64,000 bases of DNA, taken from contig CATNEN010000008.1 in the NCBI GenBank assembly GCA_950097015.1, positions 1,922,001-1,986,000 on the forward strand, given 5' to 3'. Made by a program: the position numbers and the translations under genes. The notes below the pieces were generated by a model. The model had not been told where the DNA came from. It saw only the letters and a program-made list of their open reading frames with translations, and did no database searches. Positions 3,866 through 64,000 of the stretch are shown here, one piece after another; position 1 is the stretch's first letter, and every line of letters starts with the position of its first letter. Origin of the DNA: Macrostomum hystrix (taxonomy: Eukaryota > Animalia > Platyhelminthes).

Positions 3866-5790
3866 GTCTCGTCTCTCCCGTGTCTCATCTCTCCCGTATC
3901 TCATCTCTCCCGTGTCTCATCTCTGCCGTGTCTCATCTCTGCCGTGTCTCATCTCTGCCGTGTCTCATCTCTCCCGTGTCTCATCTCTCCCGTGTCTCAT
4001 CTCTCCCGTGTCTCATCTCTCCCGTGTCTCATCTCTCCCGTGTCTCATCTCTCCCGTGTCTCATCTCTGCCGTGTCTCATCTCTGCCGTGTCTCATCTCT
4101 CCCGTGTCTCATCTCTCCCGTGTCTCATCTCTCCCGTGTCTCATCTCTCCCGTGTCTCATCTCTCCCGTGTCTCATCTCTGCTGTGTCTCATCTCTCCCG
4201 TGTCTCATCTCTCCCGTGTCTCATCTCTGCCGTGTCTCATCTCTCCCGTGTCTCATCTCTCCCGTATCTCATCTCTGCCGTGTCTTATCTCTGCTGTGTC
4301 TCATCTCTCCCGTGTCTCATCTCTCCCGTATCTCATCTCTGCCGTGTCTCATCTCTGCCGTGTCTCATCTCTGCCGTGTCTCATCTCTGCTGTGTCTCAT
4401 CTCTGCCGTGTCTCATCTCTGCCGTGTCTCATCTCTGCTGTGTCTCATCTCTCCCGTGTCTCATCTCTCCCGTGTCTCATCTCTGCCGTGTCTCATCTCT
4501 CCCGTGTCTCATCTCTGCCGTGTCTCATCTCTCCCGTGTCTCATCTCTCCCGTATCTCATCTCTGCCGTGTCTTATCTCTGCTGTGTCTCATCTCTCCCG
4601 TGTCTCATCTCTCCCGTATCTCATCTCTGCCGTGTCTCATCTCTGCCGTGTCTCATCTCTGCCGTGTCTCATCTCTGCTGTGTCTCATCTCTGCCGTGTC
4701 TCATCTCTGCCGTGTCTCATCTCTCCCGTGTCTCATCTCTCCCGTATCTCATCTCTGCCGTGTCTTATCTCTGCTGTGTCTCATCTCTCCCGTGTCTCAT
4801 CTCTCCCGTATCTCATCTCTGCCGTGTCTCATCTCTGCCGTGTCTCATCTCTGCCGTGTCTCATCTCTGCTGTGTCTCATCTCTGCCGTGTCTCATCTCT
4901 GCTGTGTCTCATCTCTCCCGTGTCTCATCTCTGCTGTGTCTCATCTCTCCCGTGTCTCATCTCTGCCGTGTCTCATCTCTGCCGTGTCTCATCTCTGCCG
5001 TGTCTCATCTCTGCCGTGTCTCATCTCTGCTGTGTCTCATCTCTCCCGTGTCTCATCTCTGCTGTGTCTCATCTCTCCCGTGTCTCATCTCTGCCGTGTC
5101 TCATCTCTGCCGTGTCTCATCTCTGCCGTGTCTCATCTCTGCTGTGTCTCATCTCTGCCGTGTCTCATCTCTGCCGTGTCTCATCTCTGCTGTGTCTCAT
5201 CTCTCCCGTGTCTCATCTCTGCCGTGTCTCATCTCTGCCGTGTCTCATCTCTGCCGTGTCTCATCTCTGCTGTGTCTCATCTCTGCCGTGTCTCATCTCT
5301 GCCGTGTCTCATCTCTGCCGTGTCTCATCTCTGCTGTGTCTCATCTCTCCCGTGTCTCATCTCTGCCGTGTCTCATCTCTGCTGTGTCTCATCTCTCCCG
5401 TGTCTCATCTCTGCCGTGTCTCATCTCTGCCGTGTCTCATCTCTGCCGTGTCTCATCTCTGCTGTGTCTCATCTCTCCCGTGTCTCATCTCTGCTGTGTC
5501 TCATCTCTCCCGTGTCTCATCTCTGCCGTGTCTCATCTCTGCCGTGTCTCATCTCTGCCGTGTCTCATCTCTGCCGTGTCTCATCTCTGCTGTGTCTCAT
5601 CTCTGCCGTGTCTCATCTCTCTTTTATGTCATCTCTCTCCCGTCTCATCTATGTCGTGTCTCATCTCCCCTAGAATAATCTCTCCCGTGTCTCATTTCCC
5701 CCAGAATAATCTCTCCCGTGTCTCATCTCCCCCAGAATAATCTCTCCCGTGTCTTATTTCCCCCAGAATAATCTCTCCCGTGTCTCACCT
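3866..5790. repeat. 16-bp minisatellite (TCTCATCTCTSCCGTG), ~1.9 kb
   Basis: Tandem copies. They explain the three overlapping SSLPCLIS ORFs. Confidence 0.97.
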
Positions 5791-22868: not shown

Positions 22869-22935
22869 GGGGGGTTGGTGGCAGAGCGGTTAACCGCGTT
22901 TGCCTCTCGCGCTAAAGTCCCTAGTTCGATTCCAG
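22869..22935 (+). mobile_element. tRNA-derived SINE head, copy 2
   Basis: A-box-like TGGCAGAGCGG and B-box-like AGTTCGATTCC. Similar to 39405-39465 and 6040-6095. Confidence 0.65.
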
Positions 22936-23039
22936 AATTGCCTCCTCGCTGGCTGCGGGTCTAGTGTCACCAAACGATGCGCCATTGCTAGCAGCCCTCC
23001 TGCAATTAATAATAATAGTAAATAGGCAGTTGCAGCAAC

Positions 23040-34203: not shown

Positions 34204-35139
34204 AGCTTCGTTCAACACCGCGCCGCAGAAGAATGCCAGACTGGGCTTAGCCGCATCTGCCAGTGCGCTGAAATCGAACTTTGCTCGATCGATAATGACG
34301 AACAGAAATGACGGCAAAATAAACACGGCAGTTTTCTTTTCTTCCACAATAAAGCAAGCGAATTTGCAGAGCGTCTCCTCTAGGAGCAAAACTAGGACGC
34401 AAAATGATAAGGAGGTTGAGAGACGGGCGAGGGGAGAGACAGGGGAGGAGAAATGGAAAGCGCCAATCAGTGACGCGTGTCCCGATATTTCCCCTACTCC
34501 CAAGAGTGCAACCTCCCCGACACAACCGTATCGCCTTCCTCCTACACTCTTGCAGAACCTCGGCTTCTGGCCCAGCTCTGCGTGAGCTGCCAGCTGGGGG
34601 TGGTGGGAGCCCTTCCTCCTCCGCGTCCACCCCCCCTCTAGTCATTTTCACTCTTCCTCATTTTCGCATTGGACGGCGGAGCTGAGGTTGAGAGGAATCT
34701 TGACACCCCGGCTGCTGCTGCCGCTCTCTCTCTCCCTGTCTCTCAGAATGGCAATACAGCGACAGGCAGTGAAGCCGAGTGAGATATAAACTACTATAGC
34801 CGCTATGGCAGCTGTGGGGATTTACGGCTAAATCATTTCGTCCTTGACGGCCTTCCTTCTGCTTCCTCCTCTTCCCAACGCGCCAACCCCATTTAGCCCT
34901 CCTTTCGGCTCCCCCGTGCAAGTTTGCTGGACCTGGGAGTCTCACCTGGGTTTCTCCCTACCTCAACTCCTGCTAACTGTTCCAGACTCACTTTTCCCAG
35001 CCTATTCTCAAGGCGTCTCAATCGCTAATAAGCTAATCGATAAACTGGTAGAGCATCAATGAGAGGTGAGAGCAGTAATGATTGGAATAAAATGCTTGGC
35101 TCAGAAATAAAGAATGCCAAGCTTGATCAGAGCTTCTTT

Positions 35140-36682
35140 AGGGATGGGATTCTCTAGGGGTGAGATTCTCTAGGGGTGAGATTCTCTAGGGATGGGATTC
35201 TCTAAGGGTGAGATTCTCTAGGGGTGAGATTCTCTAGGGGTGAGATTCTTTAGGGATGGGATTCTCTAGGGGTGAGATTCTTTAGGGATGGGATTCTCTA
35301 GGGGTGAGATTCTTTAGGGATGGGATTCTTTAGGGATGGGATTCTCTAGGGGTGAGATTCTCTAGGGGTGAGATTCTAAAGGGACCGGATTCTTTAGGGA
35401 TGAGATTCTCTAATAGTGAGATTCTTTAGGGATGGGATTCTCTAGGGGTGAGATTCTTTAGGGATGGGATTCTCTAGGGGTGAGATTCTTTAGGGATGGG
35501 ATTCTCTAGGGGTGAGATTCTTTAGGGATGGGATTCTTTAGGGATGGGATTCTCTAGGGGTGAGATTCTCTAGGGGTGAGATTCTCTAGGGATGGGATTC
35601 TCTAAGGGTGAGATTCTTTAGGGATGGGATTCTTTAGGGATGGGATTCTCTAGGGGTGAGATTCTCTAGGGGTGAGATTCTTTAGGGATGGGATTCTTTA
35701 GGGATGGGATTCTCTAGGGATGTGATTCTTTAGGGATGGGATTTTCTAGGGGTGAGATTCTTTAGGGATGAGATTCTTTAGGGATGGGATTCTCTAGGGG
35801 TGAGATTCTTTAGGGATGGGATTCTCTAGGGGTGAGATTCTTTACGGATGGGATTCTTTAGGGATGGGATTCTCTAGGGGTGAGATTCTCTAGGGGTGAG
35901 ATTCTTTAGGGATGGGATTCTTTAGGGACGGGATTCTCTAGGGGTGTGATTCTTTAGGGATGGGATTTTCTAGGGGTGAGATTCTTTAGGGATGGGATTC
36001 TCTAGGGGTGAGATTCTTTAGGGATGGGATTCTTTAGGGATGGGATTCTCTAGGGGTGTGATTCTTTAGGGATGGGATTCTCTAGGGGTGAGATTCTTTA
36101 GGGATGGGATTCTTTAGGGATGGGATTCTCTAGGGGTGAGATTCTCTAGGGGTGAGATTCTCTAGGGGTGAGATTCTTTAGGGATGGGATTCTTTAGGGA
36201 CGGGATTCTCTAGGGGTGTGATTCTTTAGGGATGGGATTTTCTAGGGGTGAGATTCTTTAGGGACGGGATTCTCTAGGGGTGAGATTCTTTAGGGATGGG
36301 ATTCTCTAGGGGTGAGATTCTTTAGGGACGGGATTCTCTAGGGGTGAGATTCTCTAGGGATGGGATTCTTTAGGGATGAGATTCTCTAATAGTGAGATTC
36401 TTTAGGGATGGGATTCTCTAGGGGTGAGATTCTTTAGGGATGGGATTCTCTAGGGGTGAGATTCTTTAGGGATGGGATTCTCTAGGGATGGGATTCTCTA
36501 GGGGTGAGATTCTCTAGGGGTGAGATTCTCTAGGGATGGGATTCTCTAAGGGTGAGATTCTCTAGGGATGGGATTCTCTAGGGGTGAGATTCTTTAGGGA
36601 CGGGATTCTCTAGGGGTGAGATTCTTTAGGGATGGGATTCTCTAGGGGTGAGATTCTTTAGGGATGGGATTCTCTAGGGTGA
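35140..36682. repeat. 16-bp minisatellite (ATTCTCTAGGGGTGAG / ATTCTTTAGGGATGGG)
   Basis: Two interspersed unit variants. Two stray copies lie at ~34075-34108. Confidence 0.97.
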
Positions 36683-36838
36683 GTTTGTTTCTGGAAGAGA
36701 TTACCGCTGTGGAATGGGCGATGTTGCTGTTTTGATCTAACAGAGAGCGTGCAGACCATCTATGCACGCAGCAGATAAACTTTTGTTAAGTAAAAATGGC
36801 AGCCAACAGCAAAATTCTTGGCTGTCACACTTATCGTA

Positions 36839-37105
36839 AACAGTGCCAGGATCAGAGGGATGAAACAGTGCCAGGATCAGAGGGATAGAACAGTGCCAGG
36901 ATCAGAGGGATGAAACAGTGCCAGGATCAGAGGGATGAAACAGTGCTAGGATCAGAGGGATAGAACAGTGCCAGGATCAGAGGGATAGAACAGTGCCAGG
37001 ATCAGAGGGATAGAACAGTGCCAGGATCAGAGGGATAGAACAGTGCCAGGATCAGAGGGATAGAACAGTGCCAGGATCAGAGGGATAGAACAGTGCCAGG
37101 ATCAG
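36839..37105. repeat. 25-bp minisatellite (AACAGTGCCAGGATCAGAGGGATAG)
   Basis: About 10 copies. Confidence 0.95.
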
Positions 37106-37853
37106 AGATCAGGATCTCCAAGAATGTTCTATGCCGTGTGGCATTGAAGGGCCGGATGTTCTGCTGGCTCGCGAGTTTCGAATATTGATCAGTTGGGATT
37201 TTTTGCACCTGCCTCATTGGCAAAGACAAGCATAGTACAGACAAATATGAAGAAGGGTTCAGTTCTCATTAGGGGTCTGTTTCCATGCAGGATGTGAACT
37301 GTACAGCTGCTACATCAATTCCCCAAGACATCCATGCAGATGCCTATTTTATCTCAAGGTCAGGCCCAGTTGTAAGCACACTTGTCCTAATTTTATTCTA
37401 CTTTAAGCAAATTTTTGATTCGGTGAAGCCGCACATGACATGGACTTATAAAATTTGAAAATAAAAGTAGAAGTAGAAAATAAAAATAGAATTAAATTAA
37501 ATTAAATAGAAAGGCTAAAAAACAGCAGAGAAGGCAAATTAGAGCGTGAGAGAGAAATTGAGAAAATGGGGGAGAGAGAGAAGGTGAGAGAATGGGGGAG
37601 AGAGAGAAGGTGAGAGAATGGGGGAGAGAGAGAAGGTGAGAGAATGGGGGAGAGAGAGAAGGTGAGAGAATGGGGGAGAGAGAAGGTGAGAGAATGGGCG
37701 AGAGAGAAGGTGAGAGAATGGCGGAGAGAGAAGGTGAGAGCATGGGAGTTGAGAGAGAGGGAGAGAGGGAGAGAGAGAGCGGGAGAGAGGAGAGAGGACA
37801 CTGCCCATTGAATTTCAAAAATCTAATGTTGGAATCGATTCCGATATGTATCG

Positions 37854-37962
37854 AAAAAATTGAAATCAGGATTCGAACCAAGGCAACTCCAGACGCGTTT
37901 CGCTCTTATTGGAGCTCATCAGTAGAGTCTAGCCTAGCGCTCTAGCCATTGGCTATAGGCGC
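37854..37962 (-). ncRNA. tRNA-Ser-like Pol III unit (SINE-like) carrying a hammerhead ribozyme
   Basis: A box TAGCCAATGG (37955-37946), anticodon-arm-like CTAGG-CTAGACT-CTA, B box GGTTCGAATCC (37879-37869) and T6 run (37859-37854). Confidence 0.75.
37885..37929 (-). ncRNA. Minimal type I hammerhead ribozyme
   Basis: GACTCTA-CTGATGA-GCTC(CAATAA)GAGC-GAAA-CGC-GTC-TGGAGTT. The core is intact, stem II has 4 bp and stem I has 7 bp (2 G.U). Stem III is the palindrome ACGCGT and the cleavage triplet is GUC. Confidence 0.88.
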
Positions 37963-39404
37963 TTGTTCAAATCCAGCTTTCAATCTCAACATATCGTAAT
38001 CGATTCGGCAGCGCCCCGCAACTCAATCCATCCTCACTCAACTCCGTGGCACTGACTCGGTCGTACGAGACGCCGGTGCTGGCCTGAGAAAGAGGAAGAG
38101 AGGGAGGGAGAGAGAGGGAGAGAGGGAGAGAGAGCGGGAGAGAGGAGAGAGGACACTGCCCATTGAATTTCAAAAATCTAATGTTGGTGGGATAAGAAGG
38201 TGAAAGATTGGGGGAGAGAGAAGGTGAGAGAATGGAAGAGAGAAGGTGAGAGAATGGGGGAGAGAGAAGGTGAGAGAATGGGGGAGAGAGAAGGTGAGAG
38301 AATGGGGGAGAGAGAAGGTGAGAGAATGGGGGAGAGAGAGGTGAGAGAATGGGGGAGAGAGAAGGTGAGAGAATGGGGGAGAGAGAAGGTGAGAGAATGG
38401 GGGAGAGAGAGGTGAGAGAATGGGGGAGAGAGAAGGTGAGAGAATGGGGGAGAGAGAAGGTGAGAGAATGGGGGAGAGAGAAGGTGAGAGAATGGGGGAG
38501 AGAGAAGGTGAGAGAATGGGGGGAGAGAGAAGGTGAGAGAATGGGGGAGAGAGAAGGTGAGAGAATGGGGGAGAGAGAAGGTGAGAGAATGGGGGAGAGA
38601 GAAGGTGAGAGAATGGGGGAGAGAGAATGTGAGAGAATGGGGGAGAGAGAATGTGAGAGAATGGGGGAGAGAGAAGGTGAGAGAATGGGGGAGAGAGAAG
38701 GTGAGAGAATGGGGGAGAGAGAAGGTGAGAGAATGGGGGAGAGAGAATGTGAGAGAATGGGGGAGAGAGAATGTGAGAGAATGGGGGAGAGAGAAGGTGA
38801 GAGAATGGGGGAGAGAGAAGGTGAGAGAATGGGGAGAGAGAAGGTGAGAGAATGGGGGAGAGAGAAGGTGAGAGAATGGGGGAGAGAGAAGGTGAGAGAA
38901 TGGGGGAGAGAGAAGGTGAGAGAATGGCAGTTTATAAAACAGGCTGCACTATGTGTGAGTGCGGATGCATTTACAAGCCGCCAAGGTTCGTGGCTCATCA
39001 TCAGCATCATCCTAGCGAGGTTTGCACTCTCAAAAAAATTCACTTTGGGCCTGAAATTTTTCCGGTCCTTCGGAGGCAGCCGAAATTCAATTATTTGGTC
39101 GGGACTGGTCGGGGGGCTTCAAGAGACTTCTAACAGGAGAAGTTCAGACAAGTCTGCAGGGTGAAGATGAAAGAGGAGATGGGAGGAATTCACACTGCGC
39201 AGCCCTGCTTAGACGCAGTGGGCTGAGCAAAGTACAAAATGTCACGGCTGGTTTGAAGTGTCGGAAAGCGCTATATTAACCTTACTTATTGAATTTCTTC
39301 TATGGACATTTCACTGTCTTCGAGTCGAAGAATAATGTGAGCTTGAGAGAAACTCTTTGGTAGCGACAGACCTACTTAAGTTTGTTAAGCACTACTAGCA
39401 AGTA

Positions 39405-41039: not shown

Positions 41040-41720
41040 TGCTAACAGGTTATCAACTATCTAACAGGTTATTCACCTGTCTAACAGGTTATCAACTATC
41101 TAACAGGTTATTCACCTGTCTAACAGGTTATCAACTATCTAACAGGTTATTCACCTGTCTAACAGGTTATCAACTATCTAACAGGTTATTCACCTGTCTA
41201 ACAGGTTATCAACTATCTAACAGGTTATTCACCTGTCTAACAGGTTATCAACTATCTAACAGGTTATTCACCTGTCTAACAGGTTATCAACTATCTAACA
41301 GGTTATTCACCTGTCTAACAAGTTATTCACCTGTCTAACAGGTTATTCACCTGTCTAACAAGTTATTCACCTGTCTAGCAAGTTATTCACCTGTCTAACA
41401 GGTTATTCACCTGTCTAACAGGTTATCAACTATCTAACAGGTTATTCACCTGTCTAACAGGTTATTCACCTGTCTAACAAGTTATTCACCTGTCTAGCAA
41501 GTTATTCACCTGTCTAACAGGTTATTCACCTGTCTAACAAGTTATTCACCTGTCTAGCAAGTTATTCACCTGTCTAGCAAGTTATTCACCTGTCTAACAG
41601 GTTATTCACCTGTCTAACAAGTTATTCACCTGTCTAGCAAGTTATTCACCTGTCTAGCAAGTTATTCACCTGTCTAACAGGTTATTCACCTGTCTAACAG
41701 GTTATTCACCTGTCTAAAAG
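41040..41720. repeat. 19/20-bp minisatellite (CTAACAGGTTATTCACCTGT), partly a 39-bp dimer
   Basis: Tandem copies with ACAGGT/ACCTGT inverted repeats. Confidence 0.95.
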
Positions 41721-41854
41721 GTTTCCACCGTTATTCACCTGTCTATCAGGTTATTCATTAGTCTAACAGACTAATGAGTCTGTGTAGTGTAGCATATTAT
41801 TTGCCCGTAAAATCAATGATCTACCGTTCTAGCAAGTTAACATCCGCCTTTCAG

Positions 41855-43089: not shown

Positions 43090-45155
43090 GATCAAAGATC
43101 TCCTAGCTAGATAGCAGATAGATCACAGATCTTTGGCTGGATTGCAGATAGATCATGCATCTCTAGCTGGATAGCAGATAGATCATAGATCTCTGGCTGG
43201 ATAGCAGATAGGTCATAGATATCTAGCTGGATGGCAGATAGATCATATATCCCTGGCTGGATGGCAGACAGATCATAGATCTCTGGTTGGATAGCAGATA
43301 GATCATAGATCTCTGGTTGGATAGCAGACAGATCATAGATCCCTGGTTGGATGATCTCTGGTTGGATAGCAGACAGATCATAGATCTCTGGTTGGATAGC
43401 AGATAGATCATAGATCTCTAGCTGGATGGCAGATAGATCATAGATGTCTAGCTGGATAGCAGATAGATCATAGATCTCTAGCTGGATGGCAGATAGATCA
43501 TAGATATCTAGCTGGATAGCAGATAGATCATAGATCTCTAGCTGGATGGCAGATAGATCATAGATCTCTAGCTGGATGGCAGATAGATCATAGATGTCTA
43601 GCTGGATAGCAGATAGATCATAGATCTCTAGCTGGATGGCAGATAGATCATAGATCTCTAGCTGGATAGCAGATAGATCATAGATCTCTAGCTGGATGGC
43701 AGATAGATCATAGATGTCTAGCTGGATGGCAGATAGATCATAGATCTCTAGCTGGATGGCAGATAGATCATAGATCTCTAGCTGGATGGCAGATAGATCA
43801 TAGATGTCTAGCTGGATAGCAGATAGATCATAGATCTCTAGCTGGATGGCAGATAGATCATAGATCTCTAGCTGGATGGCAGATAGATCATAGATCTCTG
43901 GCTGGATGGCAGATAGATCATAGATCTCTAGCTGGATGGCAGATAGATCATAGATCTCTAGCTGGATGGCAGATAGATCATAGATCTCTAGCTGGATGGC
44001 AGATAGATCATAGATCTCTAGCTGGATGGCAGATAGATCATAGATCTCTAGCTGGATGGCAGATAGATCATAGATCTCTAGCTGGATGGCAGATAGATCA
44101 TAGATCTCTAGCTGGATGGCAGATAGATCATAGATCTCTGGCTGGATAGCAGATAGATCATAGATCTCTGGCTGGATAGCAGATAGGTCATAGATATCTA
44201 GCTGGATGGCAGATAGATCATATATCCCTGGCTGGATGGCAGACAGATCATAGATCTCTGGTTGGATAGCAGATAGATCATAGATCTCTGGTTGGATAGC
44301 AGACAGATCATAGATCCCTGGTTGGATGATCTCTGGTTGGATAGCAGACAGATCATAGATCTCTGGTTGGATAGCAGATAGATCATAGATCTCTAGCTGG
44401 ATGGCAGATAGATCATAGATGTCTAGCTGGATAGCAGATAGATCATAGATCTCTAGCTGGATGGCAGATAGATCATAGATGTCTAGCTGGATGGCAGATA
44501 GATCATAGATCTCTAGCTGGATGGCAGATAGATCATAGATCTCTAGCTGGATGGCAGATAGATCATAGATGTCTAGCTGGATAGCAGATAGATCATAGAT
44601 CTCTAGCTGGATGGCAGATAGATCATAGATCTCTAGCTGGATGGCAGATAGATCATAGATGTCTAGCTGGATAGCAGATAGATCATAGATCTCTAGCTGG
44701 ATGGCAGATAGATCATAGATCTCTAGCTGGATAGCAGATAGATCATAGATCTCTAGCTGGATGGCAGATAGATCATAGATCTCTAGCTGGATGGCAGATA
44801 GATCATAGATGTCTAGCTGGATAGCAGATAGATCATAGATCTCTAGCTGGATGGCAGATAGATCATAGATCTCTAGCTGGATGGCAGATAGATCATAGAT
44901 CTCTGGCTGGATAGCAGATAGATCATAGATCTCTAGCTGGATGGCAGATAGATCATAGATCTCTGGCTGGATGGCAGATAGATCATAGATCTCTAGCTGG
45001 ATGGCAGATAGATCATAGATCTCTAGCTGGATAGCAGATAGATCATAGATCTCTAGCTGGATGGCAGATAGATCATAGATTTCTGGCTGGATGGCAGATA
45101 GATCATAGATCTCTAGCTGGATGGCAGATAGATCATAGATCTCTGGCTGGATGGC
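43090..45155. repeat. 30-bp minisatellite (ATAGATCATAGATCTCTAGCTGGATGGCAG) with a 975-bp higher-order duplication
   Basis: Variant blocks recur at 43208 and 44183. Confidence 0.96.
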
Positions 45156-45719
45156 ATCCTGATGCAAAAGATTCGCTGTGAAAGGAGGCGTCCTAAGTAG
45201 TGGATTGAGAGTTTAATTTGATTGAATTGATTTCCAAGGCGCAGCTCTGATACGAGCAAATTAATTGCCTCGGCTCTTATCTCATTTGTCTTGGTTTAAT
45301 TAAGCTAATAAAACTGAGTCCACCGTTGCAGCAATGCGGTGATTATTGGTCCGACTTTGATACTCCTGTCCAAAATTAAAGGACAAAAAATACAGCGACC
45401 ATAAATTACCAGTTTCATAAAATGATAACAGAATACCCGGAAAGGTGCGTCATCGCACACTACGAGTATAAATATTAATTTTGGCATTACCAATAGAGCA
45501 ACATATCGACTGTACTTGAATGACCGAAGTGAGGGCGTTAATTGCTGAATCATACCACGGCTTTTTTATTCCATGGCTTATAAAAACATTAATGCCTTTA
45601 ACTAATATTATCAACGTCTGATCTTTATTGCTAATCCTACTGGTTCTTTTAGCGAGCCAAATGACACAAACCCCCAGTCATCCCGCCAGCCTATAGCACC
45701 CAGCCAATTCCTTCTGCCG

Positions 45720-48085: not shown

Positions 48086-49084
48086 TGGCCTAATTAATAA
48101 CGAACTATACGAGCTGAGTACATTACCAAACCCGTCTTTCCTTCGGCCTAATAATAGCACACTATCTTTCTATTGGGGCGTACGAGAACTGACTCTGAAT
48201 TTTAATGGACTCAATGTACTCATAAGTCGTATTTTTAGTGATCATATATTATTATTATTAGTTTTTAATATCATATTGCTATTATACCTTGCTTTTGATT
48301 ATATTTTTTCAGAACTGTTCCGTACAGGGGAACAGAGAGAAAGAAGAGGACAGGCCAGGCGCGGTCCGGGCGTGCAGTTGACGGGAATATTATCAGATCT
48401 GTTTCCGTTTTTTTTCAGTCCACCCGTCTGTTATAGACGGTCAGGCAGTCACAAGTCGGTTGGTTGTTCATGAAAGAACTAAAGCTGAAGGACTTGAATT
48501 TGAAATAAAAACAGGGACAGAGGGAGGGAAGTGAGAGGCATTGGATGGTCGGCCGGAAGACTGATTGCATTCTGTCCTTTTGCAAAGCATGGCTCTCAGG
48601 ACTGGCGCCGCCCGCTCTCAGCAAAAATTGCAGCTGTTAAAGCAATTTGGCTTTACTTTACTCTGCACCACCCCTACTGGCTCTGTTTGACTTAGCCTCG
48701 CAGGGAAGAATTTAGAAAGGATCTGCATTCAAATGTTTTTTTCACTGCGCGGCAGCAGCAGAGAGATAGCTATAAAGCCTGGCCAATCAGAGCTGGCTTG
48801 AGTATTGGCTGGGGGGATAGTATTTGGGAGGCCAGGAAGAGCAACTGGGCTGAGGAAGAATTGCAGCAATTGTCGCATCCTACAGAGCAGAAGGAAAATT
48901 TGAAAGAAAAGTGCCAAATTTTTCATTGCCGCCAACTGAATTTTTACAAGTAAGTGCGGATTCGATTATTTTAATCTAACTGACACCAGCGCAATAGCAG
49001 ACAAGTGAATATCACGCAATTAATTGGTTTAAAGGGTGACTGAAAAGTTAAGAAAGTCTAATAGAGAAGCTGAAAGAATTTTGA

Positions 49085-50465
49085 GTGGTTGAAAGAAGGC
49101 TGGGAGAGTGACGGAAGGAATACTGAAAGAATGACTGAAAGAATTTTGGAAGAGTGACAAAAAGAACGCTGGGGGAGTGACGGAAGGAATACTGAAAGAA
49201 TGACTGAAAGAATTTTGGAAGAGTGACAAAAAGAACGCTGGGGGAGTGACAAAAAGAAGGCTGGGAGAGTGACTGAAAGAAGGCTGGGGAGTGACAAAAA
49301 AAACGCTGGGGAGTGACAAAAAGAAGGCTGGGGAGTGACAAAAAGAACGCTGGGGAGTGACAAAAAGAAGGCTGGGAGAGTGACTGAAAGAATTTTAGAA
49401 GAGTGACTGAGAGAATGTTGAAAGAGTGACAAAAAGAAGGCTGGGAGAGTGACTGAAAGAAGGCTGGGAGAGTGACGGAAGGAATACTGAAAGAATGACT
49501 GAAAGAATTTTGGAAGAGTGACAAAAAGAACGCTGGGGAGTGACAAAAAGAAGGCTGGGAGAGTGACAAAAAGAAGGCTGGGGAGTGACAAAAAGAAGGC
49601 TGGGAGAGTGACTGAAAGAAAGCTGGGAGAGTGACGGAAGGAATACTGAAAGAATGACTGAAAGAATTTTGGAAGAGTGACAAAAAGAACGCTGGGGAGT
49701 GACAAAAAGAAGGCTGGGAGAGTGACTGAAAGGAGGCTGGGGAGTGACAAAAAGAACCCTGGGGAGTGACAAAAAGAAGGCCGGGGAGTGACAAAAAGAA
49801 CGCTGGGGAGTGACAAAAAGAAGGCTGGGAGAGTGACTGAAAGAAGGCTGGGAGAGTGACAAAAAGAAGGCTGGGATAAGTGACTGAAAGAATTTTAGAA
49901 GAGTGACTGAGAGAATGTTGAAAGAGTGACAAAAAGAAGGCTGGGAGAGTGACTGAAAGAAAGCTGGGAGAGTGACTGAAGGAATACTGAAAGAATGACT
50001 GAAAGAATTTTGGAAGAGTGACAAAAAGAAGTCTGGGAGAGTGACTGAAGGAATACTGAAAGAATGACTGAAAGAATTTTGGAAGAGTGACAAAAAGAAG
50101 GCTGAAAGAGTGGCTGAAAGAAGGCTGGGAGAGTGACTGAAAGAAGGCTGGGAGAGTGACTGAAAGAAGGCTGGGAGAGTGACTGAAAGAAGGCTGGGAG
50201 AGTGACTGAAAGAAGGCTGGGAGAGTGACAAAAAGAAGGCTGGGAGAGTGACTGAAAGAAGGCTGGGATAAGTGACTGAAAGAAGGCTGAAAGAGTGGCT
50301 GAAAGAAGGCTGGGAGAGTGACTGAAAGAAGGCTGAAAGAGTGGCTGAAAGAAGGCTGGGAGAGTGACTGAAAGAAGGCTGGGAGAGTGACAAAAAGAAG
50401 GCTGGGAGAGTGACAAAAAGAAGGCTGGGAGAGTGACTGAAAGAAGGCTGGGATAAGTGACTGAG
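49085..50465. repeat. Composite purine-rich minisatellite (~23-bp GAAAGAAGGCTGGGAGAGTGACT core)
   Basis: Variant tandem units. Confidence 0.92.
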
Positions 50466-50576
50466 TGGAGGTACCTCGATGGAATCCTCCCAAGTGCGCC
50501 AGAGCTGGTTGAAATCGGATTAAAAGTCGTCAGGCGTCAGACTTCAATCGCATGCTGTGTACTCGCGCACCTGATC

Positions 50577-50819: not shown

Positions 50820-53013
50820 GATCCAACCAGTCCTATTAGTGCCTAATAGTTCAATGATCGCCAGCTCTCAACGATTTACTCTTTTTCTGCTCCTGTCTTT
50901 TTGCCACTTACGAGCGAATTTATTCTGACTGCACAATGCGCAGTCGTGACTGTAGTAGGACGCGTCCTTAGCGCCACTACATGGGCAAATAATATTAAAG
51001 ATTACTCGATTAGTGAAAAAAGTCTCAAAAGGTATGTTTCATGGATCTTGTTTCTAGGGAGAACATACTCCTGTTTACCAACATTAAGGAAGGCTTGGTC
51101 CCTACGCGGTGCATAATTGGTCCCTTGAGAGGCCTAGATATACATTGAGATGCATCAAACGTAAAGTTTGTTTTTTGCTAGAAATATGATCTGACGGAAT
51201 TTGCTTAGTTAAATAACTGATCCGTCATCAAATGGTAAAGTCGAATGCGCGCGTGCTTGCTGCAGCCTCATTCACAGAGAAAATGTATTTGAGCAGTTGA
51301 TAAACTTGCGATGCGAGCTGCTTAGTAAGACTTATCCTGTTTCATATTTAATGTTCATCAGCTGATCATCATTTTATCCCCGCTTTGCAATTAGTGGCTT
51401 TCTAATTGATTTCTATAATAAATTTGTTACTCAAATACAGTATAGGAGTATTTGCCCGATGCGAGTATAAGCGAAGTGTACTTTAATAATCAAATTCTAT
51501 TTCTAATATTATCCGATAATCTCTAGCTAACCAACGTCTGTCCTTTTTATTTTGTTTTATTTCACGTGCTGAGACGAAACAAATAAAACGAAAGTCGCCT
51601 TGCGTTATACTTTAATATACGCGCCTAAATCTAAATTAAGTTTAATTAAGAATAATGAATTACATCTGACACAAGCGGGCCAGATGTACAGTCGAGAGCT
51701 CAGCCGCAGCTATTGCCTTTTTAATGCGGCTGTTCAGTCCATGGACTGGAGGACGCCACAACGACCCTCAAATATCCCAGCTGATGCTGGTACCCATTCA
51801 ACAGCTGCATGGGTAAACTGAATTAACTGTATAGAACTACCAAGTTCAAGCAGCTCTGTCTAGACTCTAGATAAAGGTAGGTGATCACCGAAGTCTGAGA
51901 TGATGCAGGCACATTCGGGTGACGCGTTGATAAAGTTTGAAGGCCTGGCAAGGCCGCACTGAGGCGCAGTGCGAATTCGTGTATTGGGGTGTATGAAATA
52001 CACTAGCTCTTATTGGAAAAATCTGACCTTCGCCCAGAACTGTTGAATATCTCGACGGTCTGAAGGGCTGGCGACTTGATTACTCGTATTGTTGGCCCGT
52101 GTTTTTTGAGTTTAGTGTGCTTCCGTTGCTCCGTTCAGGTACAGCAAAACTTTTTCCCCAATTGGTACAAACACGGGCGGCAAAAGGGCTTGGTAGTCCT
52201 TCTGTTAGTGCAAAGTCAAGTATATCTTTCTATAGGAGACAAGCTGTTCCAACGAAGACAAGAATCGAACCACTGACCTTTAATTTTCGAGTTTGATTCT
52301 TATAGATTCGTAGTCCACAACCCCTGCTTATAAAATAACTTGATGTATAGTTATTTTTATTAATAACCCGTGCTATCATAGTATAGTTTCAGGTATTTAC
52401 CATGAAATAGCCCAGTTTTGCCTCAGTTGTAAAGGACCCATCGACAGTAAGCTGACTTCCTCAGTAATTACAATAATCCCAGTTCGCTTTTGTGACATCT
52501 AATATTGCGAAATAGCAGTAAGAAGTATGCTGAGACAGAATGGACCTGAGGGGAAGAATTAAAAAGAGTAAAGTGAATAGGCTTTAGAAATTGGTTGCCG
52601 TTCGATCTACTCTTTTAGTAAGGCCTGTCAAAGCGTGCGTAAATATAATTAAATTAACCGTTTCGCTGCATGAGTTCCACATGCTGCCATGGAATTGCAT
52701 AGAGGCAAATTATGGATTGATTATTGTTTATTAACTAAACGAGTGCTTCATGAGAAAAATCGGATGCTTCGTATATACTACACGCTTGTACTTGCTATTT
52801 CAGCTAAAGTGCTCTAATAATTAACACGATTAATATACAGAGGACAGAGACGAAATTAAACACTAAAATGTTGCGTATAGATCTTTGTTTTTCTTTTCTA
52901 TATGAAGTCTTAACTTTTTATTATTAATGGTCCATTCGCCTATAGCGGGCCTCAAAATGAAGTCAATTGTATGAACCCGTTTCTCTCTGATCTCCTGTTT
53001 GTTCCGCATAGAC

Positions 53014-55553: not shown

Positions 55554-58500
55554 TCATTCCATGACACGATCATTTTCGGCCGGCAGCAGTCGGCACACGC
55601 TGTTGGCAGGCAGTACTTCAATGCGAGCTGGTCCACAATGCGGTGCCAAGGACTGGTCCCCCGTTGCTAAGCGAAAGACGCAGACAGCAGCGGGCCAATC
55701 TGGACCAGTAAGTTCAGGTGGAAGCTCACGCAGGTTGACACAAGGCACCTTGGCCGAAATAAAGCCATAGTCGACAGCAAGCAGAGAGGCCGTGCGATTA
55801 GCGCCACTGTCGACTGAGAGTACAGAACCGCGATACCAACAGATACCACCTGAAGCCTTGAAGAAGAAAGCGACAAATTTGCCTGGGAATAGATAGCTAA
55901 CTGGCCTAATCAGCACACCGTGATAGTCGTACCAAAGGTGCATACGTGCAGCCAGCCGATGCAGCAGCTGCTGTGACCATGGTAATAGGTGCACTGATAA
56001 ATGTGCACTATCGGAAGCCGGAAGAACAACAACATCGTACAGATCTGGCGGCGGGATGGGTGCTGGCAAAATTTTCTCACAAAAATCTGGCGGCATTGTA
56101 GCAAAAATGTTGCGCATTTGTTCTGGTGTGTAGCGCAGACGAAGCTTAGCACGCTGTTGCGTCTGGTTACTAGAACAACTAGTAGTGGTAGCAGTTAATT
56201 TGCAAGATTTAAGACTACCAGAAGCTACCAGAGCGTTGGAAGTTTGCTCTTTGCTGCTTCTTAGATTACACGAGGTTGACAATGACGCATCCCTGCTTGT
56301 TGTGCTGATGAATTCAGTAAAGAAGTTTTCCATACCAAAAAGGATCTGTTTTGTTGACAACGGCGTTTGACTTTGGTCGCTTTCAAAAGTGACAGGACTG
56401 TCTCGTTTAACATGACGACCCACTGCCAACAGGTTGTTCATTACACACGTAGGAAGCTTGATCTCAGGAATATCAGAGCTGTCATCAGATTTAACACAAA
56501 AGTTTAGGCTTGTGAATGCAGTTAGCATGTTGCAAGCGTCGGATGCAAACTCGTTAGGCGAAGTCAAAATGCATTCGAAAGCGAGAAAATTTTGGTACAA
56601 CTCCTTAAGTTGAGGCAGTACTTTTAACTGCAGCGCATCAAGAGTGCCCTCCTCTTCATTGCCATAGTCTATATACAGCACTCGCACGGATTGAGAACAA
56701 ACAGCCTTAACTTCGGCTCGGAACCAACCGCCTTCAAACAATCCGATGCAGAACTGCCCTACTTTGGGATCAGTCAAGGTTTCAGCAGACGTAGCCACAG
56801 TTTCAAGCTGACTTTGTAGTGCATTTAGTGCGTCAATGTCACTGCTTTTTTGAATCCACAAATGCAGTCTCTTTTTATTGTCACCGATAATGGTCGCCGT
56901 TGTAACAACACCTTCAAAACTCCCGCTAAGGACATTCATTTTGACGGCCCACTTAGCATGTTCTTCGGTTTGCTGAGAAACGAATGAGGCTGAGCCAGAA
57001 TCGGGTGCGGTGACATGCTCGGTGTCGGCGGTAGTTAGAGACTGGAGGTCTGCATCAATTTGCACAACTGGAAGTTTAGACAAATTTGAATAAAAAGAAA
57101 ACTGCAATTCTGAATACTCAGTGATTTTTTCAGAGGCGTCAGTTTTAAAACAACAATGTTCCGGCGAATTAAGTATGCACTCCAAGGCGAAAGCGTCTCG
57201 AAACAGCTCCTCACGATGAGGCAGTGCTCTCAGCTGCAACTCTTCCATAGTGCCTTCCTCTTCATTACCATAGTCGAGGAATAATACTCGCACGGAAGTA
57301 GAGTCCACAGCTTTTATTTCGGCACGGTACCAGCCACCTTCGAATAAACCAATGCACAACTGTCCGATCTTCGGATCGGTAAGGTTCTCGGTAGAATCGG
57401 CCAAATTTTCAAGCTGGCACTGTAAATTAATCAACTCATCGAAATCGCAGATTCTTTGGACCCACAATCGCATCGCCTTTCCGTCTTTCATTAAAGCAGC
57501 AACAGATACGAGACCTGCAAACGAGCCGTTAAGACTGCTCTTGCGTATCGACTGTTTACCATTTACTCTTAAATCATCGTGGGCGATTGAGCACTTTGCT
57601 GGATTCATGTAAAAAGGATTTTGATTTATTCCTGAATCTGACTTTACTGTGAGCTCGTTTGATTCGTTTAGACATTTTCGGTTTTGGTCAACGAAATTGG
57701 AAGTAACATCCCTTCCGGGACAGGCCAGGATGCACTCAAAAGCAAAAGAGTCACAATATAGCCTCTCCTTGAAAGGCAACATTTTTAGATGCAATTCATT
57801 CGTTGAGCCTAGAACTTCGATGCCATAGTCCAACAAAAAAACTCCATGGACACCCAAAGATGTAGCTTGTACTTCAACGCGGCACCACTTGTCTTTATGC
57901 TTAGCGATACAAGTCTGCCCTATGAAGGGATCATGTATGTCTTGCGCGTAAGTGGCTTCAACGCCAAGCAAATCATGCAGAGCAGCCAGGTCTTCAATAT
58001 CGCAAGCACGGTGAATCCACAGGCGGAGATGTTTAGCGTCACCGACAATCGGTACAGCTGCAGCAACCATACCAGAGAACGTGCCGGTTAGCTGCCGCCG
58101 TTTTACGCGCCAATTATTTAGGCAATTTAATTTGCTCTCTGGACGCAAGTTAGTATCGAAGTTAGATACTGTTTCTTCGATTTCGTGTTTGCTAATAGAA
58201 ACAGCTGGTACATCATTCGGATTTTCACCAGAACTTTTTTGCTCACAGCTGCAAATTTCAAGTTCCAGAGATGAAAGAATATTACGATCGATGTTAACAG
58301 TTGGCAATCCAGCGAATAAATCTGGCGCCAGTTGGATGTCAACTTGGCCGAGAGCAGAGACAAAATTAATTGCGTCCGCTGCAAATTGGCAGCCCGTGGA
58401 GGAAGGTAGAATGCATTCGAAAGCGAGCGCCTCTCGATACAAATCATCAATAAATGGCAGTGCTTTTAACTGCAGTTCAGGCAGAATGCCTTCTTCATTT

Positions 58501-59029
58501 CTGCCACAGTCAATGAATAGCAACTTTACTTTGTTGGAACAAACAGCTCTTACTTTTGCTCTGAACCAGCAACCGTCAAAGAGTACAGCACAAATCTGTC
58601 CAACTTCTGGTTCAGTCAAATTCCGCTCACCAGCAACTACTTTGAGCTTTCTTTGCAAGGTAGTGAGGTCATCTAAATTGCTAGTCTTTTGAATCCACAA
58701 GTGCAAGTGCTGGGGATCCTCTACAGTAGCAGCTGTTATGAGGCCATTGAATGATCCAGTCCAAATAGGCTTTCCGATTTGCCATCCTATTGAGTCGATA
58801 ACAGGCTGTAGTGATTTGTCCTTAGTTTCAAAATCAACATTTTGATCATTATCGTCGCCAGTTGCATCCATCTGTTTTTCTTCAACAAGCGTCATCAAAA
58901 TATTTTCGTCGATAGTGACAATAGGCAAGCCAAGTATCTGTTGATCTTGCACAGTGAACTCAATTTGGCCAAGCTGCATAATCCGATCACACGCGTTGCG
59001 GATAAAATCCATATTGCCGGATGACTTGG
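55554..59029 (-). CDS. Multi-Tudor-domain protein, large 3' exon with five Tudor domains
   Basis: 1152-aa ORF with repeated G..C...F..GWYRA.V...V.F.DYGNEE motifs. A candidate phase-1 acceptor lies at 59031-59030. Confidence 0.88.
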
Positions 59030-61127
59030 CTTACAGATGAAGATTATGTTGTTCGCTTTCTTGGACTTGGCTGCGTAGAGTATACTGAAAAATTAAATCT
59101 ATATTTGCCTTTTTAAGTAGTAAGGATACGAAGCTACGCTGACAGTTTTTAATTAAAGCAATAAGAAACCGCGCTTAAGAAAGCGTAAAAAACGCTTGAA
59201 AATTATATCGAAGCTATTAAAAACATGCGAAATCTGCACTTGTTGCTGGATTGTTCAAATCTATCGACAAATAATACCTGCTTAAGTTTGGATTACTATT
59301 TTACTCTGCTTAAGAATTTTATACTTAAGTTTCTTAATGTGCCACTAACTGGTATTGACTACTAGTAGGTTTTGCTTTGTTAAAGCTGTAAAAACTACAA
59401 GCAAAATCGTGATCGAACCATACCACGGAACGCCCATGACCTGGAGTTTGGGGAGCACTATTTGACGATAAAGGGCTAACTGTCCAATAGCTGTAAAAAG
59501 TATAGTAGCTCTTAGTGACCAATTTTCCGGGAAACAATTAACGAACTTAATGATTGAAGCTGTTAAAACGGAGTCAAGTATAATTGTTATTCGATTGTTA
59601 TACATTCGGCAGTAAATAACCGAATAAATTTTTGTAATAAATCACAAAGACCACGTTGTTATTGTTATACATTTTTAAAAATGTAAAAATATTTATCACT
59701 ATCTATAGTGGCTGTACTAGAACAAAATCCAACCCGAAATATTTTTATTTTAATTTTGTGGGAAAGGGCGGATAGGGCCAGAGGCTGTAAAAGTAACTGA
59801 GACTTTTGGTTCTGTATGGCGTATCTCGTTAGACTTTTTGTGTCTAACGTGACTATCTAATGTCTCAACCTGCCTATACTACTATAACGAAAAGAAAATT
59901 CTTTCGGATCTTATAGAAGAAAAGCAAAAATGTAACGCAAAACGCTGTTTCGATTGTCACAACCGACGATAATTTTTGCTTATTTGTATTATATTTGTAT
60001 TACTTATTGTATAAGTACTTATTGTATTGTATAACTTATACTTTGTATTATAAGTTATTATTATGAAGAACAGTAAGAGAAGAGAATAAGTGACATGGTG
60101 AAAGAAACAGGGAAACAGCAATTAAGCAAACTAGAAAAGATAACAAGGGCTTTCAAAAAAATAAGCTAATTATTTCTTAGATAGACCACTAAATGCCGCA
60201 CCAAGGTGAGAAATTAGATTCCTGGAAGCGCAAAAATGTTTAAGTTGAGATGGGTAGATTAGAAAGAAACATAAATAACTGGCGCACTTCAAACATAAAC
60301 TGAAAGCTTTTTTAAAACGTTTATTATGCAACACTAAATTAAAACTTTAGTGTTGACAGTACTTGAAAGGAACAAAAGTACTAGCCACGTTTGCCACAAT
60401 TTAAGTAAATCGAGCAAATTACTGATATTACTAGACTGCAACTTAAACAGGATAAATAAAAAGCAACTGAACCAAATGCATTGCGTAAATGTGCAATAAA
60501 ACTGTGTAAAGGGGTTTTTAAACTGCGTTCTGAAAGGGATATATATTGCGACAAACAAAAGAGGCCATAAAAAAGTAAACAGACCGAAAGCCAACTACGT
60601 TTCAGCGTTTACACAACAACCACTGGATTACAAATTTGGCCTTAAAACAGTATTAAACTCTTCCTGATTAATAGGACGCCAGTAAACATAATTTACTATG
60701 AATTTAGAATTCATAATCGAATTTCTATCCCAGAAGTACCGACTGCTTTATCAATGCTAATCGCCCATCTAAAAAATGCTTGAACCCATATAATTAAATA
60801 GCGTTTGAGCTTAACCTTTATTGCAGAAATGCGCAGAAGCACTATTGTCTACAAAAGCAGTAGAAAGCAAAAGCCTATTATTGAGCGAAAAGAGACACCC
60901 AGAACAACGAACTGAATAGCATTCGGGAGAGAATATAAAAAATACTATGAATAAACCGAGACATAGCAGAAAGTATTAGAATGTAAAACAATTAAAATAA
61001 AGTTTTGCTGGCAAAGTGAAGATAAAGCCTAACCTATTTCAGAAAAATTGTGCAACAATTTTTTTTGCATACGAATTTTTGAAAAAGCACTACAACAGCT
61101 TGCGTGCCGAATATACAGAAAACATAC

Positions 61128-64000
61128 CTAGATCCTCTGCAGAGCTAACCAATGGCAAATGAAAGAGTGAGGATACTTGAATAACAAAATTAATCTCGAT
61201 GAATTCGACAAGCTTGTCACAGGCCTCTGCAGAAAAGCAACAACCGTCTGGCGAAACGATGATGCACTCAAAAGCAAAGGCGTCGCGATACAGATCGGCA
61301 CATTGCGGAAGTGCTTTCAGTTGCAACTCGTCTAGAGTGCCTTCCTCCTCATTGCCGTAGTCGATAAACAGCACTCGCACAGAATCAGAATAAACAGCCT
61401 TCACTTCAGCTCGGTACCAGCCGCCTTCGAACAATCCGATGCAAAACTGTCCGACCATCGGCTCGATCAGCAAGTCGGCTGATGTAGCCACAGCATCAAT
61501 TTGACTTTGCAAGCCATTGAGGGCATCTAGGTCACTGCACGACTGGATCCACAAGTGTAGCCTAGAGTTGTCATCAGCCATAGGCAGTGCAATGCTCACA
61601 ACTCCCGATACGGTATTGCCGGGTTTACACTTCTGAATCGTTGGAATCTTTGATTTGTTGGCTTCTGATTCATCAATGGTTTCAACTAGCGTAGCTGTGG
61701 AGTCTACAATGCTTACGGCGGAAGTCGTTATTGATTCTAAAACACTCATTTCGGCCGAAACAGTTGGCAAATCACAAGGCGTAGAAAACTCAATGATGAA
61801 GTCAATCTCTCCGAGTTCGACAAGCTTGTCACAGGCCTCTGCAGAAAAGCAACAACCGTCTGGCGAAACGATGATGCACTCAAAAGCAAAGGCGTCGCGA
61901 TACAGATCGGCACATTGCGGAAGTGCTTTCAGTTGCAACTCGTCTAGAGTGCCTTCCTCCTCATTGCCGTAGTCGATAAACAGCACTCGCACAGAATCAG
62001 AATAAACAGCCTTCACTTCAGCTCGGTACCAGCCGCCTTCGAACAATCCGATGCAAAACTGTCCGACCATCGGCTCGATCAGCAAGTCGGCTGATGTAGC
62101 CACAGCATCAATTTGACTTTGCAAGCTATTGAGCGCATCTAGGTCACTGCACGACTGGATCCACAAGTGTAGCCTAGAGTTGTCATCAGCCATAGGCAGT
62201 GCAATGCTCACAACTCCCGATATGGTATTGCCGGGTTTACACTTCTGAATCGTTGGAATCTTTGATTTGTTGGCTTCTGATTCATCAATGGTTTCAACTA
62301 GCGTAGCTGTGGAGTCTACAATGCTTACGGCGGAAGTCGTTATTGATTCTAAAACACTCATTTCGGCCGAAACAGTTGGCAAATCACAAGGCGTAGAAAA
62401 CTCAATGATGAAGTCAATCTCTCCGAGTTCGACAAGCTTGTCACAGGCCTCTGCAGAAAAGCAACAACCGTCTGGCGAAACGATGATGCACTCAAAAGCA
62501 AAGGCGTCGCGATACAGATCGGCACATTGCGGAAGTGCTTTCAGTTGCAACTCGTCTAGAGTGCCTTCCTCCTCATTGCCGTAGTCGATAAACAGCACTC
62601 GCACAGAATCAGAATAAACAGCCTTCACTTCAGCTCGGTACCAGCCGCCTTCGAACAATCCGATGCAAAACTGTCCGACCATCGGCTCGATCAGCAAGTC
62701 GGCTGATGTAGCCACAGCATCAATTTGACTTTGCAAGCCATTGAGGGCATCTAGGTCACTGCACGACTGGATCCACAAGTGTAGCCTAGAGTTGTCATCA
62801 GCCATAGGCAGTGCAATGCTCACAACTCCCGATACGGTATTGCCGGGTTTACACTTCTGAATCGTTGGAATCTTTGATTTGTTGGCTTCTGATTCATCAA
62901 TGGTTTCAACTAGCGTAGCTGTGGAGTCTACAATGCTTACGGCGGAAGTCGTTATTGATTCTAAAACACTCATTTCGGCCGAAACAGTTGGCAAATCACA
63001 AGGCGTAGAAAACTCAATGATGAAGTCAATCTCTCCGAGTTCGACAAGCTTGTCACAGGCCTCTGCAGAAAAGCAACAACCGTCTGGCGAAACGATGATG
63101 CACTCAAAAGCAAAGGCGTCGCGATACAGATCGGCACATTGCGGAAGTGCTTTCAGTTGCAACTCGTCTAGAGTGCCTTCCTCCTCATTGCCGTAGTCGA
63201 TAAACAGCACTCGCACAGAATCAGAATAAACAGCCTTCACTTCAGCTCGGTACCAGCCGCCTTCGAACAATCCGATGCAAAACTGTCCGACCATCGGCTC
63301 GATCAGCAAGTCGGCTGATGTAGCCACAGCATCAATTTGACTTTGCAAGCTATTGAGCGCATCTAGGTCACTGCACGACTGGATCCACAAGTGTAGCCTA
63401 GAGTTGTCATCAGCCATAGGCAGTGCAATGCTCACAACTCCCGATATGGTATTGCCGGGTTTACACTTCTGAATCGTTGGAATCTTTGATTTGTTGGCTT
63501 CTGATTCATCAATGGTTTCAACTAGCGTAGCTGTGGAGTCTACAATGCTTACGGCGGAAGTCGTTATTGATTCTAAAACACTCATTTCGGCCGAAACAGT
63601 TGGCAAATCACAAGGCGTAGAAAACTCAATGATGAAGTCAATCTCTCCGAGTTCGACAAGCTTGTCACAGGCCTCTGCAGAAAAGCAACAACCGTCTGGC
63701 GAAACGATGATGCACTCAAAAGCAAAGGCGTCGCGATACAGATCGGCACATTGCGGAAGTGCTTTCAGTTGCAACTCGTCTAGAGTGCCTTCCTCCTCAT
63801 TGCCGTAGTCGATAAACAGCACTCGCACAGAATCAGAATAAACAGCCTTCACTTCAGCTCGGTACCAGCCGCCTTCGAACAATCCGATGCAAAACTGTCC
63901 GACCATCGGCTCGATCAGCAAGTCGGCTGATGTAGCCACAGCATCAATTTGACTTTGCAAGCTATTGAGCGCATCTAGGTCACTGCACGACTGGATCCAC
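61128..64000 (-). CDS. Multi-Tudor-domain protein, upstream exon of near-identical 204-aa extended Tudor units (5' partial)
   Basis: The frame is open to the window edge. The period is 612 bp, with five FEGGWYRAEV...LFIDYGNEE domains. A phase-1 donor G|GTATGT follows 61128. Confidence 0.9.

Follow-up and report, generated by a model that had tools for sequence, protein, structure and literature searches.

Repeats that carry hammerhead ribozymes, such as retrozymes, Sm-alpha and the repeats of Penelope-like elements, are widespread, and their transcription is an open point. The schistosome elements Sm-alpha and Sj-alpha were reportedly described as SINE-like elements by Ferbeyre et al. in 1998 and Laha et al. 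in 2000, and minimal hammerheads of the terminal repeats of Penelope-like elements are said to have been treated by Lunse et al. in 2017. In engineered tRNA-embedded hammerheads, e.g. the tRNA-Val-ribozyme vectors, the ribozyme is placed after an intact tRNA and is expressed by Pol III. The head of Sm-alpha is an intact cloverleaf, and 1,098 of its copies were classed by tRNAscan-SE as a functional tRNA-Gln-TTG (PMC2770079). Metazoan non-LTR retrozymes occur as small repeats, either in tandem or dispersed, that give rise to circular RNAs, in platyhelminths as well as in other animals, with ligation by RtcB after hammerhead cleavage (PMC7229834). Penelope-like elements have been proposed as likely helpers of the retrozymes reported in platyhelminths (PMC7229834; PMC7761336). 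With a circular template for the reverse transcriptase, cDNAs longer than one unit are expected, and plant and animal retrozymes 'do not seem to harbour transcriptional promoters' (PMC7761336). Metazoan type I hammerheads with a palindromic helix III of 1-2 bp cleave poorly alone, are thought to act as dimers and occur in the repeats of Penelope-like elements (PMC4209133).

The element described here was found in a 64-kb window, i.e. the whole stretch of DNA that was analysed. Its core is a cassette of 109 nt on the minus strand (37854-37962), in which a hammerhead ribozyme is flanked by motifs of Pol III type. These 109 nt are probably the core module of a near-consensus copy of a young, high-copy, non-coding retroelement of the retrozyme/Sm-alpha-like kind, and on the best reading the element is non-autonomous.

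When 37600-38200 was scanned permissively against Rfam with cmscan, the minus strand of the cassette proved to contain a type I hammerhead that is complete. The sequence 37869-37940 (minus strand) aligned end to end with the Hammerhead_HH9 model at 38.7 bits (E 2.7e-8), a score that falls under the gathering score of 52 because the helix III hairpin is missing (5 nt of helix III loop); in the Rfam scan of the whole window at the gathering threshold no hammerhead was listed. The HH9 model itself represents a conserved intronic ribozyme of amniotes and not a repeat. According to the alignment and to the checked base pairs, the ribozyme extends over 37878..37937 on the minus strand, with the core segments CUGAUGA at 37916-37922 and GAAAC at 37897-37901 on either side of helix II (GCUC-CAAUAA-GAGC, 4 bp with a loop of 6 nt, 37902-37915). 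Helix III is reduced to the minimal palindrome ACGCGU, which is followed by C17 at 37892. Helix I is open-ended and consists of Ia (ACUCUA/UGGAGU, 6 bp), an internal loop and Ib (CUAGG/CUUGG, 5 bp). All core nucleotides are in place (C3 U4 G5 A6 N7 G8 A9, G12 A13 A14, the A15.1-U16.1 pair and C17), and helices I and II are retained in the unconstrained minimum-free-energy fold. Self-cleavage is predicted 3' of C17, between 37892 and 37891, from the GUC triplet in the cmscan alignment. The 26-nt hammerhead core matched the window once, against 0 matches expected from shuffles, and no further copies of it were found in the 64 kb when up to 3 mismatches were allowed. A stretch reading CTGATGA...GAAAC at 51339-51361 was considered as a second hammerhead and rejected as a chance-level match.

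An earlier sequence-only reading of the minus strand of 37854-37962 agreed with the sequence exactly. It had stated that all hammerhead core nucleotides are present, which was confirmed by the HH9 alignment and the base-pair check, and it had placed the cut at 37892/37891, the site also obtained from the GUC triplet. Its view that the palindromic stem III is the minimal type of Penelope-like elements, thought to act in dimers, is in agreement with PMC4209133.

The hammerhead core alone was also encountered under another organism label. In run X9 (organism C), a 232-nt contig matched 37887-37927 only, with 5 differences in 41 nt and wholly different flanks, which indicates that related species carry this ribozyme type in other elements.

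The ribozyme is surrounded by sequence motifs of Pol III type. A perfect B box, GGTTCGAATCC (37869-37879, minus strand), is the sole match to the consensus GGTTCGANNCC on both strands of the 64 kb (mean of 0.34 matches in shuffles), and its initial bases are shared with the 3' strand of hammerhead helix Ib. On the other side of the ribozyme, fold and sequence revealed a 5' hairpin (37937..37962, minus strand) with the A-box-like motif TAGCCAATGGC (37945-37955). The B box is followed after 9 nt, a distance equal to tRNA-gene spacing, by a run of six T resembling a Pol III terminator (T6, 37854..37859, minus strand). The compound pattern of an A-box-like motif, 25-95 nt, a B box, at most 25 nt and T4 occurred once in the window and in 0 of 200 shuffles; the arrangement proposed in the sequence-only reading, with the hammerhead between A-box-like and B-box motifs and T6 after them, was thus recovered as a unique pattern. 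The starts of the two boxes are 77 nt apart, and the likeness to a type 2 Pol III promoter holds at the level of motifs only. In a major variant of the family, an extra T between 37951 and 37950 gives TAGCCTAATGG, an exact fit to TRGCNNANNGG. This variant made up 3007 of a depth of 7500 (about 40%) in the DNA run X1 and was the sole form in runs X3 and X12, and the copy in the window belongs to the variant with the 1-nt deletion, which made up about 60% of the X1 depth. The abundance of the deletion variant suggests that amplification does not depend on an exact A box.

The 109-nt sequence is no detectable tRNA. ARAGORN reported no tRNA at the locus, either at default settings or with introns and the standard lowered threshold. 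A tRNA-Ser(aga) with a 26-nt intron was called only with -ps80 -i, a setting that gave 96 'tRNAs' in the window and therefore operates at noise level. Of the stems of a cloverleaf, the anticodon stem cannot form in the cassette, the T stem reaches 3 of 5 pairs and the acceptor strands remain unpaired. The promoter-type signals, in contrast to the tRNA body, have good support. The cassette joins the hammerhead to what is left of a tRNA gene, whose Pol III signals, i.e. A box, perfect B box and T6, alone have survived. Several claims of the sequence-only reading did not withstand these results. The likeness of the flanks to tRNA-Ser(AGA) was reflected only in the noise-level ARAGORN call, and the Rfam tRNA model had no match in 37600-38200; the placement of the hammerhead 'in place of the variable arm' holds in no testable sense. 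A conformational switch between stem I and the anticodon-like arm was rejected, since no anticodon stem forms, there is no cloverleaf to compete with the ribozyme, and helices I and II persist in the minimum-free-energy fold; the idea of two competing folds is therefore unsupported. The Infernal comparison which that reading had proposed came out divided, positive for the hammerhead, below the gathering score, and negative for the tRNA at E up to 10. Elsewhere in the window, ARAGORN called a tRNA-Glu(CTC) at 22873-22945 (plus strand), with no T run within 45 nt. As no Rfam tRNA was found at the gathering threshold anywhere in the window, this is probably a pseudo-tRNA or a false call.

The cassette is part of an insertion of about 438 bp (37750..38187, minus strand), which was delimited by a direct repeat, BLAST and its junctions and corresponds to about 1.23 units of a 355-bp non-coding repeat; its left border is approximate, because it blends into GA-rich sequence. 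The insertion is composed of the 3'-terminal 80 nt of one unit, followed by a full unit. The upstream copy of this 80-nt direct repeat (38108..38187, minus strand) is 95% identical to 37753-37832 and contains a 37-nt unique part, CCAACATT...GTGTCC (38151-38187), and a CT-rich tract. The downstream copy (37753..37832, minus strand) lies 355 nt away, forms the 3' end of the full unit and runs into the minisatellite. A repeat pair search and the folds revealed an 18-nt inverted repeat that brackets the cassette, with the 5' arm at 37989..38006 and the 3' arm at 37832..37849 (minus strand; 17/18 or 94% complementary). A single GA-rich minisatellite with units of 24/26 bp, the presumed target, is split by the insertion, with the 26-bp array on the left (37548..37779) and the 24-bp array of matching unit on the right (38195..38927). 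A CT-rich tail is present, and the locus lies in minisatellite DNA, where target-site duplications are unreadable.

No ORF was found in the unit, and no ORF for a reverse transcriptase or a GIY-YIG endonuclease within 5 kb of the element, where the ORFs, including those at 37967-39164, are minisatellite artefacts. A Pfam scan of some larger ORFs of the window likewise yielded no reverse transcriptase. BLAST of the 435-bp element detected no other copies in the 64-kb window; the BLASTN census suggested in the sequence-only reading, run within this window, thus returned the element itself only.

Several other features were observed in the window. Five minisatellite arrays with units of 20, 24/26, 25 and 32/80 bp are situated in the 7 kb around the element (35130-36683, 36839-37107, 37548-37779, 38195-38927 and 41042-41723), and the 24/26-bp array or look-alikes of it reached a depth of 750-3,200 in two runs whose kind was guessed as RNA. 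The ORFs near the element are mostly low-complexity artefacts. Two ORFs on the minus strand, at 55554-59012 (1152 aa) and 61090-63960 (956 aa), encode about five Tudor domains each (Pfam E 5e-53 and 3e-66, respectively). A 481-aa ORF at 49048-50493 (minus strand) contains BspA-type leucine-rich repeats (Pfam LRR_5, E 5.5e-15), a domain met less often in animals than in bacteria and protists. No homologues were found for a 686-aa ORF at 43107-45167, and the 1152-aa Tudor ORF was absent from the records.

Assembled contigs of four public runs were compared with 37400-38200, with the unique flank masked. In the DNA run X1 the element was covered by unitigs of 65-130 nt at a depth of about 2,000-4,264 and a summed depth of 3,000-33,000, values which do not represent copy number. 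Variation of 5% was reached only at three substitutions (37843, 37868 and 38032) and one indel. Within 37869-37940 there was no variant of at least 5%, though summed depths were in the tens of thousands. A 332-nt contig of run X3 corresponded to 37798-38085 with CT-rich ends. The unitigs and the X3 contig continued unbroken across both borders of the cassette, the arms of the inverted repeat, the 37833/37832 junction and the cleavage site. The contigs of the family terminated in CT-rich tracts, and two X1 contigs represented copies truncated at 37906 and fused to CT-rich simple repeats. In the contigs of the four runs no joints were reported, and neither RNA ends nor circular junctions nor cleavage products were seen. 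Judged by the very deep, short unitigs with few variants, the family appears to be a young, homogeneous, high-copy repeat with a unit of about 330-355 bp that ends in a CT-rich tract; its contigs were too uniform for a covariation test. That the sequence belongs to a repeat family, as the sequence-only reading had supposed, is thus supported by the high-depth unitigs in public DNA runs. Its description as a stand-alone small RNA unit of 109 nt, in contrast, had to be given up, because the contigs cross both borders into a unit of about 330-355 bp.

No copies were detected in scans of public genome contigs and viral contigs, and a scan of public metagenomes yielded no copy of the family and only an unrelated hammerhead element (L001). 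L001 is the eukaryote-like metagenome contig Ga0157379_10272740 of 1539 bp, with a type I hammerhead at 267-297 (ACACAG-CTGATGA-GACC-CAATAA-GGTC-GAAACGCGTC-CTGTGT). Its first ~125 nt recur at the end of the contig (from ~1416), so that the unit measures about 1.4 kb and is tandem or circular; L001 is a candidate retrozyme or Penelope-like element.

Folding of the 355-nt unit in the polarity of the hammerhead gave -123.7 kcal/mol (z -4.68), and 0 of 100 dinucleotide shuffles were as good, while the opposite strand gave a z of -1.0. For a circular form of the unit, linearised at the cleavage site, folding gave a z of -5.5 with mononucleotide shuffles. Two domains make up the predicted fold. One is formed by pairing of the CT-rich tract with an internal purine-rich tract. 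The other is a junction with the 5' hairpin and the hammerhead, closed by an imperfect inverted repeat of ~45 nt; to this repeat belong the 18-nt arms as its outer part, the pair ATTGAAA/TTTCAAT and a pairing of GGATTTGAAC (37965..37974, minus strand) with the B-box sequence. The predicted compact, strand-specific fold is as expected for retrozyme or viroid-like RNAs.

For a retroelement of the retrozyme/Sm-alpha-like kind we infer transcription, cleavage, circularisation and mobility as follows. Since Pol III would be halted by the internal T6 after about 115 nt, RNA of the element would derive from external transcription or from read-through. The cut by the hammerhead would fall after the C at 37892 and would probably be made by a dimer, in which two hammerheads pair via ACGCGU. 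A reverse transcriptase acting in trans, most likely that of a Penelope-like element, would then copy the circle, and copying would start from the CT-rich tract at GA/CT-rich simple-repeat targets. The resulting copies would have a CT tract at both ends, would be read through the cleavage site and might exceed one unit in length (1.23 units here). In addition, a short Pol III transcript with the ribozyme may arise from the A and B boxes, and of all steps this one is the least certain. Several features match this circle-template model, i.e. the 1.23 units, the CT-tract ends and the GA/CT-rich setting of the locus, together with the 5'-truncated copies, and the ends of the family's copies lie in the CT tract, neither at Pol III start or stop sites nor at the cleavage site. 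The 1.23 units could equally have arisen if a full copy was inserted into an older one, heavily 5'-truncated, at its CT tail. As the locus has a single copy with a single hammerhead, its own transcript could not be cut twice.

A further possibility, which we hold to be unlikely, assigns the cassette a larger part within a retrozyme-type element. The cassette would be an active Pol III gene, and its short, abundant transcript with a dimer-type hammerhead would pair via ACGCGU with the single hammerhead that each long transcript of a dispersed copy contains, thereby licensing cleavage of these transcripts in trans. A cut at the position of a tRNA intron, within a tRNA-derived frame, would give ends that resemble those of spliced tRNA halves and would hand them to the tRNA ligase for circularisation. 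If true, this would be the first retrozyme-type element with its own promoter wrapped around the ribozyme.

It is rather improbable that the cassette is instead a self-contained Pol III gene or SINE head and is itself the functional or mobile unit. TFIIIC would bind to the A and B boxes, transcription would start ~10-15 nt upstream of the A box and stop at T6, and the ~115-nt RNA would cut itself into products of ~75 nt and 38 nt. The perfect B box, the consensus A box of the major variant and the T6 at tRNA-gene spacing are consistent with such a gene, and the survival of canonical boxes after loss of the tRNA stems suggests that DNA motifs and not RNA pairings were kept, but the A box of the copy in the window has the 1-nt deletion and, without a cloverleaf, the supposed competition of two folds does not arise. 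Run X12, labelled as another organism and guessed to be RNA, contained a single contig of the element, a 157-nt sequence reaching from 38009 to 37854 with 1 substitution and 1 indel. This contig stopped exactly at the last T of T6, with zero depth over the remaining element, as might be expected of a Pol III transcript; however, ends of contigs are not ends of RNAs, and its start at 38009, ~54 nt upstream of the A box, is more distant than a type 2 promoter would allow. The contigs of the family argue against this explanation. Beyond the cassette the repeat continued, unbroken and at similar depth, over at least 120 nt on the upstream side and at least 55 nt on the downstream side, so that the 5' end of the unit does not lie at the tRNA-like head and the mobile unit is not the Pol III unit. 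Moreover, T6 and T5 runs are both present on the sense strand inside the repeat unit, whereas the unit of a tRNA-derived SINE is free of internal terminators, and Pol III is unlikely to make the full unit, because T6, and then T5, would stop it after about 115 nt.

We also doubt that the element is an inert relic, in which hammerhead and boxes are fossils and the sequence spread as satellite-like DNA or by passive mobilisation with neither motif needed. This view agrees with a solitary locus whose single hammerhead has a helix III too short for good function as a monomer (PMC4209133), with the embedding of the copy in minisatellite DNA and with the abundance of the variant with the damaged A box. 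Fossil motifs would, however, be difficult to reconcile with the lack of variants of at least 5% across 37869-37940, with the intact state of each core nucleotide and both helices, with the strand specificity of the fold and with a 157-nt core that is near-identical in a run labelled as another organism. A MITE of 175 bp (37832-38006) carrying the cassette and bounded by the 18-bp inverted repeats is very improbable and was rejected, for although its termini are complementary at 17 of 18 positions and the start of the X12 contig lies 3 nt beyond one arm, no target-site duplication is found beside the arms (GTTG vs GGCA), the contigs of the family pass through both arms unbroken and the arms form the outer portion of an RNA helix that is longer and strand-specific.

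A non-autonomous retroelement of the retrozyme/Sm-alpha-like kind thus remains the preferred reading, and as such the element can be compared with described systems. With Sm-alpha and Sj-alpha it has in common that it is a flatworm repeat of about 330 bp and high copy number, with tRNA-derived Pol III boxes, a type I hammerhead with a short helix III and a helix II loop of the CAAAUA/CAAUAA type. Helix II of Sm-alpha, which we take to be the GUCC/GGAC of the crystallised ribozyme, differs from that of the present element. Sm-alpha also has an intact tRNA cloverleaf, whereas no tRNA is detectable here. In our own reading of the W36.2/Sm-alpha fragment, the B-box-like sequence TTCGAGTC stands about 60-75 nt upstream of the ribozyme; together with the cloverleaf head, this provides indirect evidence that the Sm-alpha ribozyme is situated outside the tRNA part, in contrast to the present ribozyme between the boxes.

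Like the metazoan non-LTR retrozymes, the element is a small non-coding repeat that bears a type I hammerhead and is present in many copies; its unit RNA is structured, its copy is of over-unit length, and its unit of 355 bp lies within their range of about 150-400 bp. Described retrozymes are typically tandem arrays expressed as circular RNAs and have no apparent promoters, whereas the present locus comprises 1.23 units, is known from DNA sequence and has A and B boxes and T6 around the ribozyme. As in the hammerheads of Penelope-like-element terminal repeats (PMC4209133), helix III is cut down to the palindromic ACGCGU, which suits dimers. Unlike Penelope-like elements, the present element has no attached reverse transcriptase ORF, and its helices I and II, which have their full size and an internal loop, belong to the canonical tertiary-contact type and not to the 'min-HHR' type. 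The best-scoring Rfam model, Hammerhead_HH9 (RF02275), has a helix II and loop nearly identical in consensus to those of the element, but possesses a helix III hairpin that the present ribozyme lacks. The CAAUAA loop and an identical GAAACGCGUC also occur in the otherwise unrelated L001, indicating that this ribozyme type is common among animal repeats.

While ribozyme repeats of the retrozyme/Sm-alpha-like kind are known, a canonical hammerhead nested between tRNA-type Pol III boxes appears to be new. The sequence-only reading did not recall such a placement, and the literature searched, to which the original Sm-alpha paper did not belong, yielded no account of a hammerhead placed between A and B boxes. 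If the boxes prove to be fossils, the element would represent one more retrozyme-like family. As it stands, it provides a concrete, testable case of a high-copy ribozyme repeat with built-in transcription signals. As in the engineered tRNA-ribozyme vectors, A and B boxes and a T-run terminator, which in the vectors drive and frame the ribozyme, are found together with a hammerhead. The vectors are artificial and bear the ribozyme after an intact tRNA, whereas the present arrangement is natural and has it between the boxes, so that the element may be regarded as a natural counterpart of these cassettes.
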